64,000 nucleotides of DNA from Basidiobolus meristosporus CBS 931.73 (GCA_002104905.1 MCFE01000314.1:1-64000), one strand, 5' to 3'. Positions 2,394-64,000 are shown, counted from the stretch's first letter. Numbers and translations are program-made. The notes: generated by a model not told the origin, from the letters alone.

Positions 2394-3291
2394 TCTTCTA
2401 ACCTTTTCCTAGCCCTTACTATAACACCTACACCCTAAACATTCCCCCATTAGTAACCTCCGCGAAGAACAGTGGGTCATAAAAGGGAATTGTGGATTAT
2501 CTATTTGGGTTTACCTAATACAATATATCCGAACTAAAAACCTGACAAATTTCGCCCCCAAAATCCACCTTCTTGGGTTACCCCGTATCCAGGTGCTTAA
2601 ATGTATTTATCTCGCAAATTGAGAATGGCATTTCACGGTGAGTCTAAGTAAGCAAACATAAAGTGCGTTACACTTTGCTTCCTATTATTTCAATCTGCTG
2701 AAACGCTTCACCAACGATGATTTTAACTACTACTACTACTACTACTATTGCTGGTTAATATGCTACAAAGAAATGTCTGGCCATTACTAGGAATAGTGCA
2801 CAGTGTAGCGGCCAGAAGTAAACTGACACAGAATCCCGTTTAGAAAGATGCCACAATACTATATGATTGACTACTGCTTCTCGTTGGCCAGAAAATCTAT
2901 GTACAGCATTACCACAGACATGTCATTGGCACTCAAGAAAATCTGATTTCAAAACATAAGATGCATCTGGACATATCAAACTCAAGTCACCTGCAGAAAG
3001 AGCCATGACTGTAAGTATAGCACAAGTTAGGAAGCATCTAATTGATGTACAGCTTACAAGCCGAGTTGTCAGCATAGGTAGATTGGTACTAAGTGTGCTT
3101 AGCCAACAACACATGTCGCATTATAAAACTGCTAAATGCGCACTAGGTTAAAGCCATGAATGCTACGGACATCTCTCCTCAACACTGTGCGTGTGATCAG
3201 CAAACACTGATGGGCGTGCTTCTGCATATTCTTGCATTGTAAAATGTATAAATGCCTTGATCTTCTGATTATTTTCAACCATTATATCAAC

Positions 3292-3678
3292 ATGAAATAC
3301 TCCATTGCAAAGCTTCTCATTGTCATCTCCGCTGCGTTGGCTATCAATGCTACAGTCCTTGAGCGTTCCTACGATCCAGACTACAAGGGGGTAGGTCATG
3401 GTGGTGGCGGTGACTATGACGATGATTATGACGGCAATGGCCATGGAAGAGGAAAGAAGTATGGCAATGACTACGATGATGATTACGATGGTAACGGCCA
3501 TGGAAGAAGAAGGAGATATGACGGCGATGACTACGACGATGACTACGATGGTCATGGTCACGGAAGAAGAAAGAAGTATGACAATGATTACGACAACGAT
3601 TATGATGGTAATGGCCATGGAAGAAAGAAGTATGGTGGTGGCGGCGGCGGCCGAGGTGATGATTACGACGATTATTAG
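3292..3678 (+). CDS. Secreted Gly/Asp/Tyr/His-rich repeat protein, copy 1 (128 aa)
   Basis: ATG 3292 to TAG. N-terminal signal peptide MKYSIAKLLIVISAALAINA, then four DYD(D/N)DYDG(N/H)GHG cores separated by R/K clusters. Frame is conserved in five paralogs. Confidence 0.88.
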   Translation: MKYSIAKLLIVISAALAINATVLERSYDPDYKGVGHGGGGDYDDDYDGNGHGRGKKYGNDYDDDYDGNGHGRRRRYDGDDYDDDYDGHGHGRRKKYDNDYDNDYDGNGHGRKKYGGGGGGRGDDYDDY

Positions 3679-3898
3679 AGACTTGAGATACCTTTTTGAT
3701 ACCAGATACTCAATAAACTATATTTACACATGGCATGTTGTAAGGTATATCCAAGGTTATCAGCGCAACGTTAGCAAAGCATAAATGGCAGCTTAAATGT
3801 TGCAAGTTAACCCAAATCATCCGATAATCACCGAAATGGTGAAGTATTAGAAAAAGTGCGATTGACCCAATCTGGGTTGAGGTGTTGAAATACTAAAA

Positions 3899-3971
3899 CG
3901 AGGCGCATGGGACTCGAACCCACAATCCCCAGATCCGAAGTCTGATGCCTTATCCATTAGGCCAACGCCCC
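3899..3971 (-). tRNA. tRNA-Arg (anticodon TCG), copy 1
   Basis: 73-nt cloverleaf: acceptor GGGGCGT/GCGCCTC, D arm GCCT-AATGGATA-AGGC, anticodon loop CT-TCG-GA, T loop TTCGAGT. TTTT Pol III terminator follows immediately. Confidence 0.97.
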
Positions 3972-4299
3972 TTTCCTCTCGAAGTTAGGACTCGGCCTAG
4001 ACCACTACCCTCTTTTAGCAATTCTATAAGCCTACTTGAAATCCAATACCGTGTTGGACCAAAAACTGGAGTTATAGTAGTAATCCTATTCGACGTATCC
4101 TTCGAATCCGAACACATGTTCAACACAAGTATTGGCATAAATCAACACCTTCATAAGAAGGGATCCCACATCAATGTTAGTGCTGTGCAGTCCACCGATA
4201 CAAATCGACAAAACCGATAAAGTGTGCTATGGCATGCGTCTACCCTCATTACCCTATAAATACATTCGGTCAGCCACTCCTTCAAATCACTATCTCAGC

Positions 4300-4668
4300 A
4301 TGAAATACTCTGTTGCAAAGCTTCTCCTTGTCATCTCCGCTGCGTTGGCTATCAATGCTACAGTCCTTGAGCGTTCCTACGATTCAGACTACAAGGGGGT
4401 AGGTCATGGTGGTGGTGACTACGATGATGATTATGACGGCAATGGCCATGGAAGAGGAAAGAAATATGGTGATGACTATGACGACGACTACGACGGCAAT
4501 GGCGGTGGAAGAAGGAGACATGATGGTGATGACTACGACGACGATTACGATGGCCACGGTCATGGAAGAAGAGAGAAGTATGGCAATGATTATGATGATG
4601 ACTACGATGGAAGAAAGAGGCATGGTGGTGGTGGTCGTGGTCGTGGTGATGGCTATGACGACTACTAG
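4300..4668 (+). CDS. Secreted Gly/Asp/Tyr/His-rich repeat protein, copy 2 (122 aa)
   Basis: Same signal peptide and repeat architecture as copy 1; TATA-like CCCTATAAAT about 45 bp upstream. Confidence 0.88.
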   Translation: MKYSVAKLLLVISAALAINATVLERSYDSDYKGVGHGGGDYDDDYDGNGHGRGKKYGDDYDDDYDGNGGGRRRHDGDDYDDDYDGHGHGRREKYGNDYDDDYDGRKRHGGGGRGRGDGYDDY

Positions 4669-4905
4669 AGACTTGAGATACCTTTTTGATACCAGATACT
4701 CAATAAACCAATATTTACACATGGTATGTTAAGAGGTTTATTTATTTACAAGGCTATCGACGCAACGTTAGCAGAGCATAAAATGGCAGTTTAAATGTCG
4801 GAAGTTGATCCAAATCATCCCATAATCGCCGAAATGGTGAACATGGTGAAGTGTTAGAAAAAGTGCGATTGACCCAGTCTGGGTTGAGGTGTTGAAATAC
4901 TAAAA

Positions 4906-4978
4906 CGAGGCGCATGGGACTCGAACCCACAATCCCCAGATCCGAAGTCTGATGCCTTATCCATTAGGCCAACGCCCC
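4906..4978 (-). tRNA. tRNA-Arg (TCG), copy 2
   Basis: Identical 73 nt to copy 1, with TTTT terminator. Confidence 0.97.
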
Positions 4979-5284
4979 TTCACTCTCCAAATTACAGCTC
5001 AGGGTAGAACACTATCTGCTTTGATCAATTCTGCTTGATTGAGCCGTTAAACATTGAAATAGCGGTAACCATAGTTGACATATCAATCAAATCCGAACAT
5101 ATGTTTAACGCAAGTATTGGCATAAATCAACTACTTCATAAGATGAGATCACACATCAATGTTAGCGCTATGCAGTCCACCGATAAAGATCGACAACACT
5201 GATAAAGTGTACTACTGCATGTGTCTACTCTCATTATCCTGTAAATGTATCCAGTCGTTCACTCCTTCAAATCACCATCTCAAG

Positions 5285-5668
5285 ATGAAATACTCCATTG
5301 CAAAGCTACTACTTGTCGTCTCCGCTGCATTGGCTATCAACGCTACAGTCCTTGAGCGCTCCTACGACCCTAACTACAAGGGGGTAGGTCACGGTGGTGG
5401 CGATGACTACGATGCTGATTATGACGGCAATAGCCATGGAAGAAGAAAGAAGTATGGTGATGACTATGACGACGACTACGATGGTAATGGCGGTGGAAGA
5501 AGAAGGAGATACGATGGTGATGACTACGAGGATGACTACGATGGTCACGGTCACGGAAGAAGAAAGAAGCATGGCAATGATTACGATGATGACTATGATG
5601 GCAATGGACATGGAAGAAAGAAGCATGTTGGTGGTGGTGGCCGCAGTGAAGACTATGATGACTACTAG
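5285..5668 (+). CDS. Secreted Gly/Asp/Tyr/His-rich repeat protein, copy 3 (127 aa)
   Basis: MKYSIAKLLLVVSAALAINA signal peptide plus repeats; its flanks are the most diverged of the five. Confidence 0.88.
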   Translation: MKYSIAKLLLVVSAALAINATVLERSYDPNYKGVGHGGGDDYDADYDGNSHGRRKKYGDDYDDDYDGNGGGRRRRYDGDDYEDDYDGHGHGRRKKHGNDYDDDYDGNGHGRKKHVGGGGRSEDYDDY

Positions 5669-6148
5669 AGGCTTATAATACCTTCTTGATACCAAATACC
5701 TAATAAACTGTAATTTCTCCCGATTTACAAAGTTGCAAGATTCCTCAAATGATATTAGCTTCATGCTTGCATTGCTCACAAAAAATATCCGCTTCAAGCG
5801 TTCCCGTAAAATCATTGAATACTGATATTTGAAATTCAGGAAATTTACGGTAATTTGCTATTGGTGTGCTTATCCAACCAAGGAAACGGATCAATCTGTG
5901 GTCTATTAGAGCTTACTACAATAAGTTGACCTTCCGCCGAGGCTATAAGTAACATGTGGTGCATGGATTAAACTGACAATCCCCATGCCTTGACACTGCA
6001 GTTTGAAGGAGATCACTATCACATATCATGATTCGATTGCAAAGCTTAACAAATCCACAACACTGATGAAGCGTGCTACTCCCTATGCTTACTCTCACTA
6101 CCCTATATAAAAATCTGATCGGTCCCTCCTTCAAATCACTATCTCAGC

Positions 6149-6535
6149 ATGAAATACTCTGTTGCAAAGCTTCTCATTGTCATCTCCGCTGCGTTGGCTA
6201 TCAATGCTACAGTCCTTGAGCGTTCCTACGATCCAGACTACAAGGGGGTAGGTCATGGTGGTGGCGGTGACTATGACGATGATTATGACGGCAATGGCCA
6301 TGGAAGAGGAAAGAAGTATGGCAATGACTACGATGATGATTACGATGGTAACGGCCATGGAAGAAGAAGGAGATATGACGGCGATGACTACGACGATGAC
6401 TACGATGGTCATGGTCACGGAAGAAGAAAGAAGTATGACAATGATTACGACGACGATTATGATGGTAATGGCCATGGAAGAAAGAAGTATGGTGGTGGTG
6501 GCGGCGGCCGAGGTGATGATTACGACGATTATTAG
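6149..6535 (+). CDS. Secreted Gly/Asp/Tyr/His-rich repeat protein, copy 4 (128 aa)
   Basis: CDS differs from copy 1 at only about four nucleotides; CTATATAAAA TATA box near 6103. Confidence 0.88.
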   Translation: MKYSVAKLLIVISAALAINATVLERSYDPDYKGVGHGGGGDYDDDYDGNGHGRGKKYGNDYDDDYDGNGHGRRRRYDGDDYDDDYDGHGHGRRKKYDNDYDDDYDGNGHGRKKYGGGGGGRGDDYDDY

Positions 6536-6763
6536 AGACTTGAGATACCTTTTTGATACCAGATACACAATAAATCAACATTTACACATGATATGTTCAG
6601 AAGTGTGGCTATCTATAAGGGTATCAAAATGTAACGCTAAAACTTTCAAGTTGGAAATTGAAAAAATCCAGATCATTTGATCTACTTTGAAATGGTGACC
6701 TTGGCGAATAATCCAAATAGTGTTATTGACTCCATTTCGATTATGGTATTGAAATTACAAAAA

Positions 6764-6836
6764 CGAGGCGCATGGGACTCGAACCCACAATCCCCAGATC
6801 CGAAGTCTGATGCCTTATCCATTAGGCCAACGCCCC
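6764..6836 (-). tRNA. tRNA-Arg (TCG), copy 3
   Basis: Identical 73 nt to copies 1 and 2, with TTTTT terminator. Confidence 0.97.
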
Positions 6837-7164
6837 TTTCCTCTCGAAGTTAGGACTCGGCCTAGACCACTACCCTCTTTTAGCAATTCTATAAGCCTAC
6901 TTGAAATCCAATACCGTGTTGGACCAAAAACTGGAGTTATAGTAGTAATCCTATTCGACGTATCCTTCGAATCCGAACACATGTTCAACACAAGTATTGG
7001 CATAAATCAACACCTTCATAAGAAGGGATCCCACATCAATGTTAGTGCTGTGCAGTCCACCGATACAAATTGGCAAAACTGATAAAGTGTGCTACTGCAT
7101 ACGTCTACTCCCATTACCCTATAAATACATCCGGTCGGCCACTCCTTCAAATCACTATCTCAGC

Positions 7165-7545
7165 ATGAAATACTCTGTTGCAAAGCTTCTCCTTGTCATC
7201 TCCGCTGCGTTGGCTATCAATGCTACAGTCCTTGAGCGTTCCTACGATTCAGACTACAAGGGGGTAGGTCATGGTGGTGGCGGTGACTACGACGATGATT
7301 ATGACGGCAATGGCCACGGAGGAAGAAAGAAGTATGGCAACGACTACGATGATGATTACGATGGTAAAGGCCATGGAAGAAGAAGGAGATATGACGGGGA
7401 CGATTACGAGGATGATTACGATGGTCACGGTCACGGGAGAAGAAAGAAGTATGACAATGATTACGATGATGACTATGATGGTAATGGCCATGGAAGAAAG
7501 AAGTATGGTGGTGGTGGCCGAGGTGATGGTTATGACGATTATTAG
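7165..7545 (+). CDS. Secreted Gly/Asp/Tyr/His-rich repeat protein, copy 5 (126 aa)
   Basis: Same signal peptide and repeats; upstream region is nearly identical to that of copy 2. Confidence 0.88.
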   Translation: MKYSVAKLLLVISAALAINATVLERSYDSDYKGVGHGGGGDYDDDYDGNGHGGRKKYGNDYDDDYDGKGHGRRRRYDGDDYEDDYDGHGHGRRKKYDNDYDDDYDGNGHGRKKYGGGGRGDGYDDY

Positions 7546-9821
7546 AGGCTTGAGATACCCTCTTGATACCAACAACACAATAAACCAATATTTACATATG
7601 GCATGCTGAGAGGTGTATCTATGATCAAGGTCATCAACGTAACGTTAGCAAAGCATAAAATGCCAGCCTAACCCCCCCCCCATTAATGCACTGATATGGG
7701 CGTATACTTCAAAGAACAGAATATTGAAAGTGACAATTGCCAATGCTGTTAATGGATAACCTCAATTTAAATGTTTGAAACTCTGGTTTACATACTGTTT
7801 TCTGGGGCATTTTTAGTGATTATAATATTAACAAAAAATACTGGTCCTCAACTGGGGTGCACTTACCAAATGCTACCTAATTTTGGACCCAATGCAATGC
7901 TGATATCTCACTGGTCTAGTATCAGTGCGTGATATTTCTCAGTGTGCTATCATCATACTGAGGTCTATGAGTTTCCATAACAATTGCACTCCCCTACCTG
8001 GATAATTGATTGAAACTATCCATCAATGCATTTAGAAGAGTGGTGCCTTTTTGGTATGTTTATACCACTTTGCCATAGTAGTGTGGATCATTTATTTGTT
8101 AATACTAGGCATAACACAGGGCCACCACATCAAGTAATATTCAACCACATCTAGACTGCAAATTTGTAGCCACAAAACTTTCACCCATATGCTGGGGCAG
8201 ATAGGTAACCCCAGAGTGAATGGCTGCTTCACCAAGAATTGATACTTTACTAGAATTACCAACAATGACCAGTGGTATTTGGCACATAACATATTCCTCT
8301 TATTACAAATATCAATATACCTGATCAGAATCCAAGTGAGCCCACTTGCTATTACCACATATCATTGGTTTTGAATACTAAATGGTGATTATAGGGGTGG
8401 GGCGAATACTTGGTTGTGTATAAAATAACGGAGATCCCTACAGTTTCATCTCTTTATCAGCACTCCGCTGATCTAGCAGTTAGGTATGTATAGGGAGGTA
8501 CTTGTTGAAGTTACTGCTTCTTTGTTTTGGACCCTACAGCATCAATCAAGATATCCATATTTAGTGGAACTCTATACCAGCTTTTCATACAATCTCCCCT
8601 TGTTACAACACTTCTGAGTTTATTATATTATCAATAGTATAGCATTGGATAAGAGATGCAAACAATTAGTACTGTACCTAATTCAATCAATTGTCAGTCA
8701 ATATCTGAGTAATCCGACTTCTTAAGATCCTTACAGCGATTCTTCTGAAAATCCAGTAAGACTCTAAATTTTGATTATTTTTCCATGTCAAAGACAGGCG
8801 TTCAAAATAGACACTATAGTGAGATACATTTAAAGGGAAATTTCATATATGCACCGTTTAATATGACATCAACTAGTAGTAGAATGTAGACTAAACGTCT
8901 AATGGTCTAGAAATATTACTGGATATTGCTAAATATCATCAGCTAACAATCATAGTATTGAGGTGGTTAAATGAATCAAAGTCAGCACATTCATATTCAT
9001 TTGATTGTATACTAACAGAATTGCTATATTAAGGTTACTCTCCATATAAAGTATTTTGATTGATTTTAGTAGTCACTAATAGATTCCTTCGAACCCATTG
9101 TGATTAATAATAACAGGACTCCAACGGTTTGTGACCAGCACGTAAGAGATCCTTCCGTCTAAATACTACAGTTTACATGTGGCTTTGATCACCCATCTGG
9201 AACCACCCAAACCACCTTTCCGGATTTCTGGCAGACTATCATCCACTTAATATGTATAATTGGTTATTCAACCCTTCATTATATATAGCTAGGCTTTGAA
9301 AATGATCAAGAGGATTTAATTTTATAGAATCGAGATCTAAGTTTCTTCTAATCGCCTTGCACCTGCGTATTTGCCGTAGCACGGCCTTTATAACTGCGAA
9401 TTGGTTCGTTTCCTTGATGTTTCTGAGATCTCAAACGTTTGAGGTTTCAACTCGACCAAGGCTTCGTATATATGCTATGATATTTAGGGGTAGTGAGAAG
9501 TAAATGGCTATCAGATCTGTTTTGATTGCAGCAAAGTTGATGTTATGTTAATGTAATACCTGGTTTCATCAGCCTACCACGCCATAGATGTATCAATTCC
9601 TCAGCCTTTAATGCAAGTAATTTGAAACAAATCTTATTAATAATGTCGGATTACGTGTGCATGCCTGCATTCAGAAGCAGCCGTCATTCATTCCATATAT
9701 AAATTGCATCCTCATATCCTGAGACTAGTCATCCTCGCAAATACGAAACATATATATTTACGACTGATCATATACATTGACAAACCGACCTACTTTCAAT
9801 TTCTTTCCACGCACGATTCAC

Positions 9822-10769
9822 ATGATACCTTACTTCGTAATATGTGCATCGATGATGATGGCGACAGGTTTTGCTCTCGAGGACGACTGTGACCGGACCT
9901 CTCAGGTTGGTTTTCAGCCGAATTTCACTATGGAGTCTGGTGGCCTAACTAGAACCTATGCCATCAATATTCCCGACTCATACAACGATGATCCCTCCAA
10001 GAAATGGCCTTTGATCATTGATTTCCATGGCAACGGCGGGACCCCAGAGCAGCAATACGAGAATTCAATGTATTATGCATATCCAGATGGCCAGAAATAT
10101 GTTGTTGTTTACCCAGCGGGCGTAAAGAAGCATTGGCAAGGCCCCAGTTACGCCGTTCCTGGCGTAAATGATCTTCAATTTACCACCGATTTGCTCGCAG
10201 TTATCCGAGATAATTATCGTATCGATTCCGATCGTGTCTATGCTTCAGGAAAAAGTAATGGTGGAGGATTCGTTGACACCCTTGCCTGTTCGAACAATGG
10301 GGATGAATTTGCAGCTTTTGCAATGGCCGCAGCTGCCTTGTATACTGACACTTCGCGGGCCGGGTGCAACAAAAGCCGGCCAATTCTTGAAGCTCATGGC
10401 TTAGCAGATAAGACCATACCGTACAAAGGAACTTTGGACGGTAATGGGGGGCCTTTGCCTAGTATTCCCTCTTGGCTTGGTTGGTGGTCTTGGCGGGACG
10501 GATGTACCAAAGGGAGTGCACAAAAGACAACCGTAGCCAAAGCAGGTTACAACATCATCTCGTACACTTGCAATGCCTTCAACATGGTGGTGAAACATTA
10601 CCAGGTTCCAGGATTAGGTCATTGCTGGCCCAGCAGCACTGGTGACAATTATGATAGCCGAAAGTCGAGTTGTTCCGATCGATCCTTGGATTTCACCCCC
10701 GTGGTACTAGACTTTTTCAACACGTGGGATCTCACCAAGGCCTCAAGCCTACGTACACATTCTGAATAG
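9822..10769 (+). CDS. Secreted alpha/beta-hydrolase of the CE1 feruloyl-esterase-like / PHB-depolymerase family (315 aa)
   Basis: Intronless ORF with hydrophobic N-terminus MIPYFVICASMMMATGFA, PLIIDFHGNGG oxyanion region, G-K-S-N-G-G nucleophile elbow, HGLAD acid and GLGHCWP histidine. Confidence 0.85.
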   Translation: MIPYFVICASMMMATGFALEDDCDRTSQVGFQPNFTMESGGLTRTYAINIPDSYNDDPSKKWPLIIDFHGNGGTPEQQYENSMYYAYPDGQKYVVVYPAGVKKHWQGPSYAVPGVNDLQFTTDLLAVIRDNYRIDSDRVYASGKSNGGGFVDTLACSNNGDEFAAFAMAAAALYTDTSRAGCNKSRPILEAHGLADKTIPYKGTLDGNGGPLPSIPSWLGWWSWRDGCTKGSAQKTTVAKAGYNIISYTCNAFNMVVKHYQVPGLGHCWPSSTGDNYDSRKSSCSDRSLDFTPVVLDFFNTWDLTKASSLRTHSE

Positions 10770-12410: not shown

Positions 12411-12648
12411 AGAAAATCAAACTTTACTGTGCATAAGCTATAACCTAAATAGCTAGATTGGATTTAGTATCTTGGTGAATGGTAGATTTATTAACTATGA
12501 GACCATTTTCAGAATATTCTATATTTATTTGCTGAAACCTTGTGAGCTCAGACATGCCACCTCTACACTTGGTTAACTACATATAGAAGCCCACATCATC
12601 TATTGGCTCTCTCAGTCCCATCCAATTTAGGTAAACCTCTCTTGTAAG

Positions 12649-12997
12649 TGTTGTAATTATTAAGTTGTCACCTAAATATTCATGCTAACTTAGTCACATA
12701 GATCTTATTCTTTGATTAGCATTCTGTCCTGACTAAATTTCTTGTCGGGATTTACTTAGAATATTTTCACCAAACTATCAGGTACCCAGATTATGATCTT
12801 TCTCAAAGTTGTCCAAAAGCCCCCAAACTTTGCACACATATTCTTGGAACCTTCCTTAGCAAACTCTACATGTTCTTTTGCGCTACTTTATCAAAAGTAT
12901 AAATACCATACTTTTGATCAATAAATCTATAGGTGAATAACATGTAAATCCTCTAGTTTTCAATATCACTTTCAATACTCCTCAGAATATTGCAACA
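12649..12997 (+). mobile_element. Solo Ty1/copia LTR (349 bp) with 5-bp target-site duplication
   Basis: TGTTG...CAACA termini; GTAAG on both sides (12644-12648 and 12998-13002); same length as and colinear with the LTRs at 60753-61101 and 61230-61578; internal TATAAATA and AATAAA. Confidence 0.92.
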
Positions 12998-14365
12998 GTA
13001 AGTAGATAGTGAATCTGGAATTGGGAAGCCCTTATATTAGAGTGATCAGATTTTGCAAACATTGAGAATCATTACATTTGTGTACTTGGTCATTGTAGCT
13101 AATTCTACCTACAATCTCTACTAGTTATTTTTGCTTCTTGTCAAACATTCCTCCAAGAGTAAATTGTATAAAGACTAGCAAGTTCTCAAGATACCTTGAA
13201 TAAAGTGCCTTGAAATAACTAAGCTCTGAGGGTATACTTAAGTAAGCTGTATTAGCCACAATACAAGCTTATATTTGTAACAAGTATGTTAAGGTACTTT
13301 ACAATCATTGCTACTTGGTGGATCAAGCTGCGCAATATGTACTTCTATTACTTTTCAGGCCCTCAAAGTCACTGCTAGCTATCATAATATATATGTATAT
13401 ACATGTGTTTTTTTAAATGGGTTATGTACATCTTGTAAGAGTCTCTGAGATGCTGGAAGTGGTTGGGAGGGCAAGCAGACTGCTTTCACTTGTTGATTTG
13501 ATAGATGCAAGAGTGGTATTTGTACTGGTACATGATCTTGGTAGCACAAAGGTGTACATTATTTTTCAGAAGATCTCCAGAGCATGTGAGCAAAGTATGA
13601 TTTTTTAATAGCTTCGAGAATTTTAACCAGAATGCCAAATGTCCAGAACATCAGAATTCTCAAAGTTAGGGCCGAAAATAGTCAAGCTTATAAGATATGA
13701 TCCAAGTGACAGTTAATGGAATATCATGGTGTAAATGCAAAATTTATAAATCATATATGGACAATATTTCACGATGTCAAGAGCTTATTGTTTCTTTTTG
13801 TGAAGATACAAATTAGCCTCTTGGCTTGTTGAGTTGAAGTGAAATTGTACCTTTGGCTAAGAAATTATCAAGTGTAGAAGTAAGTAGGGTATAATGTTTT
13901 AGGTTATTTACTCGGGCCTATAACTATTACTTCCTAGATACAACAATTCAAATTCAATAGTAGGTACTTGTTAAATTTTCAAATAGGCTGCTTAGTATCA
14001 AACCCTTATGTTCAATGAGTACCATCACTACAGTTTTTGTGTCATAGTTTAGATTTATATAGAGCTCAATAAGCATTGTATTTTGTTTGAGTCTTGCTTG
14101 AGAACAACGGGCTTGATTACTGGCATAATCCTATATCAATTTCAAAACTGCTCTCTTCCTAGCCCACTTAGTAGTCATGAACATCAAACAACCAATGCAA
14201 GCACCAAAACGTCTGTGCATAATACGAGTGGACGTTAATGAAACCTTGTGCAACCCGCAATTTATTCTTCCCGGTCATATTTTGATGATAATGAATCCGG
14301 ATGTTTGATCTAGTCTGATAATATTCAATACATATGCATAATTGACCTCCCCACAAACTCTGCAG

Positions 14366-14845
14366 TCACTTGGATGTCACAGTTGGCTCGGTTGAAATGG
14401 TCGAACCTGGATTGCCCCAGGAGGTGGTCCAGGATGATGACCATGATGTAGCCCACGACCCGCCAGAACTGGTTGTCCCTGGGGCCGGGGTTCCAACTTG
14501 GGTAGAATTGGCCGAGGAGGATGAACTCAATGGACTATTACTGGGTGTTGAAGCTGATCCTAGTGTGCTGCTGCTGACTGATGCGACGGTGGATGAAGGT
14601 GATGCTGATGAACTACTGCCGACCAATGCGCCAGTTGTCGAGACAGAGCTATCACTGACTGGCGAATTGATCGAGGAGGCACTCGTTGGAGCAACGCTAC
14701 TAATTATGGAGCTTGCCGCGTTTGAGACTGCCGAGCTTGGAGTAACTATGCTAGTCACATTGATTGATGGAATAGTAGGCACCGCTGCACCACTGCCTGC
14801 AGCAACAATGGAAGCTAAGACGCAAAGGATTGAGATTGAATGCAT
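14366..14845 (-). CDS. Secreted Ser/Thr-rich (mucin-like) protein, 159 aa
   Basis: Signal peptide MHSISILCVLASIVAAGSGA, very high Ser/Thr/Pro content, C-terminal WATSWSSSWTTSW motif. Confidence 0.7.
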   Translation of the reverse strand: MHSISILCVLASIVAAGSGAAVPTIPSINVTSIVTPSSAVSNAASSIISSVAPTSASSINSPVSDSSVSTTGALVGSSSSASPSSTVASVSSSTLGSASTPSNSPLSSSSSANSTQVGTPAPGTTSSGGSWATSWSSSWTTSWGNPGSTISTEPTVTSK

Positions 14846-60752: not shown

Positions 60753-61229
60753 TGTTGCAAGAATTCTGTAGATATCGGAAGTGATTGGGAGAACCAGTAT
60801 ATTAGATGGCTCTCACTTAATGATATATTGAATGTAAAAGTGATAGTTATACTTTTACATGGTCTTGGCAAAACAAACAAATACACTATATTTAAGATGA
60901 CCCCAAGAGCATGTGTGCAAAGTTTGGGGGTGTTTGGACAACTTAGAATACATTCACCAAAGCATCAAGTACTCAAAACATGAAATTTCTCAAAGTAATT
61001 CCTGGCCAGGAATTTGCTCTGAATTCTCTAAGAATTGTTGGTAATGATCAAAGTGACTAAGTCAGGTGAATAGCTGGGTGTAACTACATGCTTTTACATC
61101 ACTCCCACCTAACTAAATACTCATACTAACTAGTCCCAACTGTGACCTGAAATATTCAAATTTGTCCCTAGCTAATGGTTTGGTAAATATGTCTGCAATC
61201 AGTTCATCTGCAGAGCAGTAAGCTGAGTT
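60753..61229 (-). mobile_element. 3' end of an older copia element: 349-bp LTR (60753-61101), polypurine tract and RNase H C-terminus
   Basis: LTR termini TGTTG/..CATCA; purine tract at 61102-61110; minus strand encodes YCSADELIADIFTKPLARDKFEYFRSQLGLVSMSI. Confidence 0.88.
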
Positions 61230-64000
61230 TGTTGTAAAAGTCTTGGAGATATTGGAAGTGATTGTGAGGACAAGTTGATTATGTGGTTTTCACTTAATGA
61301 TTTATTGAATGTAAAAGTAGTATTTATACTTTTACCTGGTCTTGGCATTACAAACACGTAAAATAGGTTAAGGAAGGTCCCAAGAACATGTGTGCAAAGT
61401 TTGGGGCTGTTTGGACAACTTTGAGAATTTTCATGTTCTGGGTACCTGGTATTTTGGTGAAAATATTCCAAGTAAATCCCAACTAGGAGTTTGGTCAGTA
61501 TTCTCTAGGATTTGAAGGTAATGATCTAAGTGACTAAGTTAGGTGAATATTTAGGTGGAATTACAAACTTTTACAACACTCCCACTCAGCTAAATGTTCA
61601 TACTGACTAGTCCTAATTTTGACCCAAGATATTCAAACTTGTCTCTAGCTAATGGTTTGGTAAATATGTCTGCAACCATTTCATCTGAAGGACAGTAAAC
61701 TATGCTAACTAGGTTATTCTCTACAGCTTCACATATGAAATGATGTCTAATAGCTATATTCTTAGTTCTAGCATGAAAAGTTGGATTTCTACCTAATTGT
61801 ATACATCCTTGACTATCTTGAAATAAAGTAATAGGCATTTTTTGACATAGGCCTAAATCTGTAAAAAGCTTTCTTATCCACATTACTTCTTTTGTAGCTT
61901 CACAGGCTGCCATGTACTCTGCCTCTGTGGTAGAAAGTGCTACAGTTGGTTGCTTTCTTGAATTCCATGAAATTGCTCCTTTACAGTAAAGAAAGGTGTA
62001 TCCTGTGGTGGATCTTCTGTCTTCCAGATATTGTCCCCAATCAGCATCAGAGTATCCCACAAGATCCTGTTCTGAAACCTTATAAGTGTATCTTAAGCAG
62101 ATATCAGCGGTCCCTTTTAGGTATCTAAAAATCCGCTTAGCTGCTGCAATATGATCAGATCCAGAGTTCTGATTATGTTGGCTGACAACTCCCACTGAAT
62201 ATGAGATATCTGGACATGTTCCAAGCATGATATACACCAGCCTGCCAACCATAGATTGATAAGGAAAGTCAGGGCTTTCAGATGGCACCAAGCTCTCTTG
62301 ATTTGGTTGAGTTTTGACCAAGTTAAGGTTTGTCTCCATTGGGGTAGCTGCCGGTTTACAGTCTTCCATTTGGTTCTTCTTTAGTATATCTTGAATATAC
62401 TTGGATTGGCTTAGGGTAATAGTTGGGGTATTACTGTCTATGGAGAACTTAATCCCTAAGTAGTAACTGAGCTCTTCTAGATTGGGACATCTTGAACTCC
62501 TTAGATAGGCAGGATTTAGTCTCTTCCAATGTTTCTAGGTTATTGGCAGCTGTAATGAGATCATCCACATAGAGAGCTAATAGAGCTGTATTTGCTCCAT
62601 CTGGCTTATAGTATATACTATAGTCAGCATTACTCCTTTTGAAACTCAAAGATTCCAAATAAGAATCTATCTTGCAATTCCAGGCTCTTGGTGATTGTTT
62701 AAGACCATATGGAGACTTTTTAAGCTTGCAGACCAAATGCAGGTTATCTTGGTCAGCAAACCCATTAGGCTGGTCCATATACACGTCCTCATCAAGTTCT
62801 CCATTCAAAAATGCGGTTTTTACATCCATTTGATGAATAAGTAACTTATATTTGGCTGCAATAGCCAATATTAATCTGATGGAACTAAACTTGGTTACCA
62901 GTGCAAAGGTCTCAGTATAGCCAAGTCCTTTTGTTTGAGAGTATTTTTTGGCCATAAGTCATGCTTTGTATCTTTCAATTGTACCATCAGCCTTGTATTT
63001 TGTCTTGAAGACCCATCTGCATCCAATTGATTTTGGTTGATTGGTAATTTGACCAAGTCCCCAGTTTGATTTTCCATCAAGGTCTGATATTCCTCAGTCA
63101 TTGCAGATCTTTAAAACTCTGTCTGAGGGCTATTTAGGGTCTCTTTTACAGTCTGGGGCTCATCAATATGGACTGAATAGGCATAGGCTAAGTTTGTACC
63201 CTCATTGATATAGTAATTTGCACTATTTCTTGTCCAATTGGATCTCCAGGCATTTGATACTGGAATGATCACTTCTGGGATATTCATGGGCACTGTTTCA
63301 GGCTGAACCACAGTTGTAGAGTCCTCTGGAGTGCAAAAATTTCATTATTTTGCTCTGATTCAATCCTGACTATTGGTGGACTTGAGATCAGACTTTTGTG
63401 ATCATCTGATGCCATTTTTTGCAAACATTTTGGATATTCATCAAACAGCACATCCCTGGACTTGATTAGCTTCTTTGCTTTGGTATTGTAGAGTCTGTAT
63501 GCTTTACTCTCATTGCAGTAGCCCAAAAATATGCATTTTACACTTTTTGGCTCAAATTTTGACTGATTTCCAGGCAGTTTCTTGGCATATGCTGTACACC
63601 TGGATATTCTTTGATGTTCTACACCTGGTCTGTATCCATACCATGCTTCAAATGGAGTAGAATCACAAAGTATTATGTTATAACTCCTATTCTTAGGATA
63701 TATAGCTGAGGCAACTGATTCCACCCAAAAATCACAGGATAATTTTTGATCATGGATCATAGATCTTGCCATATCAATTATTGATCTGCATGCACATTCT
63801 GCTACTCCATCTTGATGTGGGGAGTACAGTACAGTAGTCTCTTGCTTTATCCCATGAATTTAGCAGAAGTGGATGAAGAGTTTTTATGTATATTCTCCAC
63901 CATTGTTAGAGCGTATTTTCTTGATTTTTTCACCAGTTTCTTCTCCACCATGGCTTTGAGCTCCCTGAACTTAGACAGAGCTTCTCCCCTTCTCTCCATG
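61230..64000 (-). mobile_element. Ty1/copia LTR retrotransposon, degenerate pol, continues beyond the window; 3' LTR at 61230-61578
   Basis: LTR with 11-bp inverted termini TGTTGTAAAAG; PPT GAGTGGGAG at 61579-61587. Copia order integrase (KCIFLGY) > RT (QMDVKTAFLNG, YVDDL) > RNase H (YSDADW, STTEAEY, ADIFTKPL), broken by stops and frameshifts. Confidence 0.95.

Follow-up and report, generated by a model that had tools for sequence, protein, structure and literature searches.

Tandem genes for putative kexin-processed repeat proteins with acidic, tyrosine-rich cores in Basidiobolus meristosporus CBS 931.73

Introduction

Fungal kexin-processed proteins (KEPs) were reportedly the subject of work by Le Marquer in 2019. 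To count as a KEP, a protein must carry an N-terminal signal peptide as well as three or more repeats, each of at least 8 amino acids (aa) and none longer than 100 aa, set between KR, KK, RK or RR sites (PMC7329392). Umemura (2020) covered 1461 fungal assemblies and counted 43 KEPs in Basidiobolus meristosporus CBS 931.73, more than in any other strain (PMC7329392). Type S-3 (#158) of that study, for which the analysis consists of a hidden Markov model logo only, is found only in Basidiobolus; seven of the 43 KEPs belong to it, and it is described as Tyr-rich with several Asp and as lacking DUF3328 within 15 genes. A further 18 of the KEPs of CBS 931.73 occur in two or three copies (PMC7329392). 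Here we analyze a stretch of 64,000 nucleotides (nt) from this strain (GCA_002104905.1, MCFE01000314.1:1-64000), hereafter the window, in which positions 3292-7545 (+) hold an array of five genes for repeat proteins with DYDDDYDG(N/H)GHG-type cores. At slightly better than an even chance, we read these as tandem, independently transcribed genes for small, exported, disordered KEP-type polyproteins that would be cut into peptides.

The family to which the five genes belong is probably Umemura's type S-3, a match made by the paper's description alone. Both combine three or more repeats of at least 8 aa between dibasic sites with a signal peptide, putative in the window family, and both lack a nearby DUF3328 gene and have many duplicates in CBS 931.73. 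Unlike that class, the window family has Lys at the end of more than half of its linkers. The 18 KEPs in two or three copies also fit the three near-identical contigs that carry arrays of the family. An earlier note on this DNA had called it the best candidate for an undescribed system, which was overstated: the KEP class is catalogued, and a Basidiobolus-only Tyr/Asp type, S-3, has already been shown (PMC7329392). Our literature search found no paper that prints the core strings and only PMC7329392 that names both Basidiobolus and Kex2, while the secretome paper PMC9391592 contains nothing specific on the family.

Other described systems share parts of this architecture. Ustilago maydis Rep1 and Candida albicans Ece1 are secreted polyproteins of conserved repeats with dibasic cuts and a non-repeat terminal fragment, as is proposed for the window family, and their products act structurally or physically rather than as hormones (PMC2515848). 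They differ in their KR sites, hydrophobic or amphipathic cores and single gene copies, in contrast to the polyanionic Tyr/Gly/His cores and ~40-gene arrays seen here, and they have no sequence similarity to the window family. Dikaritin or ustiloxin-type precursors (UstA, PhomA, asperipin) also combine a signal peptide, putative in the window family, with repeated Tyr cores between basic sites, whereas the window family lacks a nearby DUF3328 (UstY) or tyrosinase gene, lacks strict KR sites and lies outside Dikarya. Two specific assignments were rejected. A dikaritin/ust-RiPS precursor is characterized by a neighboring DUF3328 gene, often together with one for a tyrosinase; DUF3328 was not found among window ORFs of at least 150 aa, is not on record beside the sister arrays, and is absent within 15 genes for type S-3. 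An alpha-factor-type pheromone precursor would have an MF_alpha or MF_alpha_N domain and KR followed by X-Ala or X-Pro dipeptides; here there is no such Pfam match, and Tyr or His, not XA or XP, follows the basic clusters.

Results

The array consists of five intact, intronless open reading frames (ORFs) of 122-128 aa on the + strand, as the earlier note had described, each beginning with a conserved MKYS(I/V)AKLL start and spaced in tandem units of 864-1016 nt (Table 1). These ORFs are real genes kept by selection. In a frame test over all 435 pairs among 30 family members, the differences per codon position were 0.08, 0.05, and 0.26. The ratio of nonsynonymous to synonymous substitution rates (dN/dS, or omega) came to 0.11 for the sense frame; four other frames gave 1.3-2.1, and the antisense frame with the common wobble position gave 0.19, as expected. 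Across methods, omega was 0.07-0.25 with NG86 and, for pairs within the window, 0.11-0.24 with LWL85 and 0.25-0.42 with YN00. NG86 overstates dS in this case because the composition is rich in Asp, Tyr, His, and Asn, all with two-fold codons; region-wise dN/dS values from NG86 were dropped in favor of LWL85, YN00, and plain counts of residue and codon differences. By those counts, codons differ at 24% of identical residues, and 12.5% of aligned residues differ. All methods agree that purifying selection acts on the reading frame.

These results bear on the view that the ORFs are nonfunctional, a low-complexity satellite that happens to be open in several frames. Several frames on both strands are indeed open across the repeats, as is seen in low-complexity DNA. 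However, the third-position periodicity, the restriction of omega values well below 1 to the sense frame and the wobble-sharing antisense frame, and the fact that 41 of 42 copies conserve the start codon, the signal peptide, and the stop codon make a satellite scarcely credible. The surroundings of the genes add to this. Spacers and flanks average only ~55% identity between units, yet a TATA box 45 nt before the ATG is kept in four of the five window genes, and an AATAAA signal lies ~33 nt past the stop codon in all five. Because these elements are kept amid decayed spacers, the genes appear to be separate, old, and maintained transcription units.

All five genes follow a common plan: a start that resembles a signal peptide is followed by a conserved segment of 20 aa and then by four cores with basic linkers, and the protein closes with a conserved ...GYDDY end. 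The repeated cores noted earlier are thus present, although their number is four rather than three to four, and they are flanked by a non-repeat N-terminal segment, which is conserved, and by a C-terminal tail. The intragenic period is 57 nt (19 aa), with 3.5-3.8 copies per gene and a DNA match of 75-78%. The four cores of each gene measure 12-16 aa, their lengths varying by DYDD quartets, and lie between basic clusters in the manner of KEP repeats. The earlier suggestion that a signal peptide, putative here, repeated cores, and multibasic linkers form the architecture of a processed precursor fits the published KEP definition. Within one gene, the cores are near-identical peptides encoded with strongly diverged synonymous sites, and because these sites are so far diverged, the likeness of the cores is held by selection and not by recent duplication.

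The pattern of conservation differs along the protein, with residue-pair differences of 7% in the signal segment, 8% in the N-terminal segment, 11% in the cores, 16% in the tail, and 27% in the linkers. K/R swaps account for 45% of the linker changes, so that the linkers are loose and still basic. Across all family coding sequences, synonymous codon differences at identical residues are found at 31% in the cores versus 16% in the signal peptide; gene conversion at the 5' end, or selection against DNA repetitiveness in the cores, is a possible cause of this contrast. At the level of whole units, 3277-~4190 and 6134-~7055 are 98-99% identical, evidently through recent duplication or gene conversion, and genes 1 and 4 differ by four substitutions, two synonymous and two non-synonymous.

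The encoded proteins are small and of unusual composition. The mature protein has ~106 aa, of which Asp, Tyr, Gly, and His make up 66-74%, and a net charge of -11 to -14, distributed in a regular pattern of about -6 followed by +3 or +4. No Cys, glycosylphosphatidylinositol (GPI)-type hydrophobic C-terminal tail, or Ser/Thr-rich stretch was seen in the family sequences. AlphaFold2 modeling with the family alignment gave a mean predicted local distance difference test (pLDDT) score of 46, with residues 5-21, within the signal segment, as the sole helix, and the protein is accordingly predicted to be intrinsically disordered. The signal segment contains two Lys, 11-12 hydrophobic residues, and an A-x-A-like end; this n/h/c layout, together with the modeled helix, points to an N-terminal signal peptide for the endoplasmic reticulum (ER).

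Two further motifs were observed in the protein. An N-x-T/S sequon, N19-A-T21 (window 6203-6211, and in the paralogues), spans the likely signal cleavage site and is relevant only if cleavage follows A-L-A (residue 17), not I-N-A (residue 20). The C-terminal tail contains an RGD, as GRGD(G/D)YDDY, in most family members. As ~0.7 RGD per protein is expected by chance in such a composition, this motif is uninformative and only a lead for host integrin binding.

To describe the linkers, we took a census of 120 basic clusters in 30 proteins. Gly precedes 118 of the 120 clusters, Tyr or His follows 109, and a dibasic pair is present in 111. Each linker position has its own pattern: an RR end without exception at linker 2, mostly RRKK at linkers 1 and 3, and RKK, RKR, or RRK at linker 4. 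Among the five window genes, the forms seen are RGKK, (G)RKK, or RRKK for linker 1, RRRR or RRR for linker 2, RRKK or RR(EK) for linker 3, and RKK or RKR for linker 4. In the Kex2 scoring matrix of Bader et al., Arg is required at P1 and Lys or Arg at P2, Arg is favored at P4, and Lys at P1 scores 0; acidic residues are enriched at P1', P2', and P4' of cleaved sites (PMC2515848). Linker 2 fits this matrix, as Arg occupies P4 and P2' and/or P4' are acidic, and its sequence, RRRR or RGRGRR followed by Y-D-G-D, appears close to ideal as a kexin site. Because disorder is predicted, the sites would be exposed, and the protein is likely to be cleaved in the Golgi, at least in part.

The family extends well beyond the window. 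It contains at least 41 intact genes, the five window genes included, and one broken copy, spread over four contigs of B. meristosporus CBS 931.73. MCFE01001009 carries 15 intact copies, MCFE01000056 carries 11 intact copies, one copy with a double frameshift, and one divergent short last gene, and MCFE01001205 carries 10 intact copies. Where the window array begins, it aligns at 85% with the beginnings of two sister arrays, but the outer flanks differ, and for this reason the window array is taken to be a fourth, diverged locus. In the sole decayed copy (L002:10001-10360), a local double frameshift leads to two stops within core 2, which the public gene model P0005 masks as an intron. Several other public models, such as P0002 and P0004, merge adjacent family genes, and in the window the frame of gene 3 is also open from 5159 as a 169-aa ORF, which corresponds to protein P0001.

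Outside the family, no relatives were found. A word-based protein search matched only hypothetical proteins of B. meristosporus CBS 931.73. When a profile built from 19 members was searched against 1.84 billion representative proteins, without any limit on length, it recovered family members only, apart from a 239-aa repeat protein (E = 6.6e-4) that we judged to be spurious. A metagenome scan gave 53 pattern matches, none of which was confirmed as a relative; a family protein had no match in Pfam or among the sequences of solved structures, and the best score in an ESM Atlas feature search, 0.77, was noise. On present data, the family thus appears to be confined to Basidiobolus.

Regarding the genomic context, a Pfam scan of window ORFs of at least 150 aa showed no DUF3328, tyrosinase, or P450, and the genes that flank the three sister arrays have no such Pfam family on record either. 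This agrees with the earlier note, which saw no tailoring enzyme in the window. The other window genes encode an esterase-like protein, a Ser-rich secreted protein, a cyclin, a chitin synthase, a Nop protein, a GDSL lipase, BipA, a DEAH helicase, a cullin, an NAD kinase, a glycosyltransferase, and a copia-type reverse transcriptase; the chitin synthase, cullin, helicase, and Nop protein mark the window as fungal. The neighbors of the sister arrays are a CAP-domain protein, ribosomal proteins, and a Pyr_redox/rhodanese protein. The nearest downstream genes encode, at 9777-10769 (+), a secreted esterase-like protein with weak matches to polyhydroxybutyrate (PHB)-depolymerase, feruloyl-esterase, and similar families and, at 14366-14845 (-), a 159-aa Ser/Thr-rich secreted protein; neither resembles a tailoring enzyme.

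The window also contains several repeats. A 155-nt tandem repeat (5.6 copies, 92% match) with no convincing ORF lies at 942-1808, ~1.5 kb upstream of the array. A dispersed repeat of ~350 nt, 71-89% identical between copies, occurs at 60753-61101, 61230-61578, and 12644-13001 (-), and again in a B. meristosporus array contig (L004:10871-11202); it is probably a small mobile element. A fragment of a copia-type reverse transcriptase (RVT_2) lies at 62449-62955 (-).

Table 1. Positions of the array genes, the parts of gene 4, and the associated signals in the window
Feature	Position	Strand	Remarks
Gene 1	3292..3678	+	128 aa; linkers RGKK, RRRR, RRKK, RKK
Gene 2	4300..4668	+	122 aa; linkers RGKK, RRR, RR-EK, RKR; fourth core shortened
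Gene 3	5285..5668	+	127 aa; linkers RRKK, RRRR, RRKK, RKK
Gene 4	6149..6535	+	128 aa; reference copy
Gene 5	7165..7545	+	126 aa; linkers (G)RKK, RRRR, RRKK, RKK
Gene 4, residues 1-20, signal-peptide-like	6149..6208	+	n/h/c layout; putative cleavage site
Gene 4, residues 21-40, non-repeat N-terminal segment (TVLERSYDPDYKGVGHGGGG)	6209..6268	+	Conserved
Gene 4, core 1, 12 aa, DYDDDYDGNGHG	6269..6304	+	
Gene 4, linker 1, RGKK	6305..6316	+	Without canonical [KR]R kexin site
Gene 4, core 2, 15 aa	6317..6361	+	
Gene 4, linker 2, RRRR	6362..6373	+	Ideal kexin site: Arg at P1, P2, and P4, then Y-D-G-D
Gene 4, core 3, 16 aa, GHGHG end	6374..6421	+	
Gene 4, linker 3, RRKK	6422..6433	+	Canonical cut would separate RR from KK
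Gene 4, core 4, 15 aa	6434..6478	+	
Gene 4, linker 4, RKK	6479..6487	+	Without canonical kexin site
Gene 4, C-terminal tail, 15 aa	6488..6532	+	Gly run, RGD, DYDDY end
TATA box, gene 1	3247..3253	+	45 nt 5' of ATG
TATA box, other units	4255, 6104, 7120	+	Gene 3 version degenerate (TGTAAATG)
AATAAA, gene 4	6569..6574	+	~33 nt 3' of stop
AATAAA, other units	3712, 4702, 5702, 7579	+	

Discussion

For the family proteins, we infer export, cleavage, and activity along the following lines. The signal peptide would carry the precursor into the ER, and the basic clusters would be cut either late in the secretory pathway or extracellularly. Kexin would cut the Arg-ended sites, always at linker 2 and also within RRKK, while the KK-ended sites would need a protease that accepts Lys at P1, for example one of the yapsin type or a trypsin-like enzyme. 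After trimming of the basic ends, the products would be polyanionic Tyr/Gly/His peptides of 12-16 aa that begin with Tyr or His and end with Gly, together with N- and C-terminal fragments. Because at least 41 genes carry about four cores each, with lengths varying by DYDD quartets, a bulk chemical role would suit these products, not that of a receptor-specific pheromone; they would act in bulk through binding of divalent metals or other cations or through oxidative cross-linking of Tyr. The earlier note's proposal of released 15-16 aa peptides with Tyr modification and metal binding is likewise conjecture.

A more far-reaching version of this proposal is quite unlikely as a whole. It holds that dosage-amplified polyanionic Asp/Tyr/His peptides, with at least 160 core copies per assembly, are released in bulk into the gut or onto the wall, unmodified or Tyr-modified, and act chemically by sequestering Zn, Cu, Fe, or Ca, by modulating minerals or biofilms, or as a tyrosinase cross-linking substrate. 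If true, the family would be a ribosomal class of metallophore or material outside Dikarya, made with no tailoring cluster and processed partly by Lys-accepting proteases, possibly host trypsin.

Several observations weigh against a KEP-type precursor. Only 46 of the 120 basic clusters (38%) end in the canonical [KR]R, and 65 (54%) end in Lys, as RRKK (30), RKK (19), RRK (7), RGKK (5), or KRKK (4), for which the Kex2 matrix score is 0. These counts bear out the earlier remark that KK-only sites suit kexin poorly, and because of them cleavage at every linker is unproven. In the window genes, [KR]R is present in just 12 of the 20 linkers and is mostly absent from linkers 1 and 4. The conserved order of RR followed by KK hints at a role beyond that of a cleavage site, and the N-terminal segment and the tail match the cores in their conservation, unlike a mere spacer. 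In addition, no transcript-derived copy of the family turned up in protein collections, and the S-3 typing of ORX75516.1 and ORY02532.1 was not confirmed by accession.

Alternatively, and in line with an option named in the earlier note, the protein may work as a secreted block polyampholyte that stays uncut or is cut only once or twice, its acidic Tyr blocks and basic clusters self-associating into a coacervate, a glue, or a wall or spore matrix, perhaps with Tyr, His, and Lys cross-linked by secreted tyrosinases of the fungus. Squid-beak His-rich proteins, mussel foot proteins, and sandcastle-worm cement are built in a comparable way, from Gly, Tyr, and His, with disorder, blocks of opposite charge, and Tyr that serves as a tyrosinase substrate. 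The window family resembles them in composition, disorder, charge blocks, and Tyr, but has no homology to them, is far smaller and more acidic, and has exposed kexin sites. The composition dominated by four residues, the strongly negative net charge with its regular alternation, the full disorder predicted, the Lys-ended majority of linkers, many of which lack a canonical kexin site, and the retention in most copies of the four-core layout, position-specific linkers, and conserved termini all favor such a material, and structural proteins commonly have a high gene dosage. On the other hand, the exposed RRRR, RGRGRR, and RR are near-ideal for Golgi kexin, so that partial cleavage would be hard to avoid. 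The mature protein is also short for this purpose, lacks Cys, a GPI-type tail, a Ser/Thr-rich stretch, and any Pfam domain found by our searches, and has no tyrosinase gene near any of the four loci. We therefore give the polyampholyte a real but minority chance.

It is very unlikely that the cores are instead specifically modified signaling peptides, or peptides of the ribosomally made, post-translationally modified (RiPP) kind, carrying Tyr sulfation, C-terminal amidation, or dikaritin-like Tyr macrocycles. The Gly before nearly every cluster recalls the X-Gly-basic layout of amidated animal neuropeptide precursors, every Tyr is set among Asp residues, and acidic surroundings are the usual context of Tyr sulfation; the Y-x3-Y spacing pointed out earlier as suited to Tyr cross-linking is likewise present in the cores. 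Animal neuropeptide precursors of the cholecystokinin (CCK)/sulfakinin type combine X-Gly-dibasic amidation sites with an acidic DY, and the window family is like them in its preceding Gly and in Tyr in an acidic context. This is a resemblance only, with no sequence homology and no amidating or sulfating enzyme seen here. Against modified peptides, Pfam shows no gene for DUF3328, a tyrosinase, or a P450 either in the window or next to the sister arrays, DUF3328 is absent within 15 genes for type S-3, and the length variation by DYDD quartets and very high dosage suit a specific ligand poorly.

Basidiobolus is an early-diverging fungus of animal guts (frog, lizard) and an occasional pathogen, and to our knowledge its secreted repertoire is almost unstudied. 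The sequences suggest that the family is a lineage-restricted addition to the catalogued KEP class, unusual in its polyanionic Tyr cores, Lys-ended linkers, and extreme gene dosage. With more than 40 strongly conserved genes restricted to the genus, the organism clearly invests in this family. The family offers a clean test of whether KEP-type predictions outside Dikarya give real peptides, and of how far kexin-type processing outside Dikarya tolerates Lys at P1. If the cores bind metal or cross-link, this would be a new chemical role for fungal repeat precursors.

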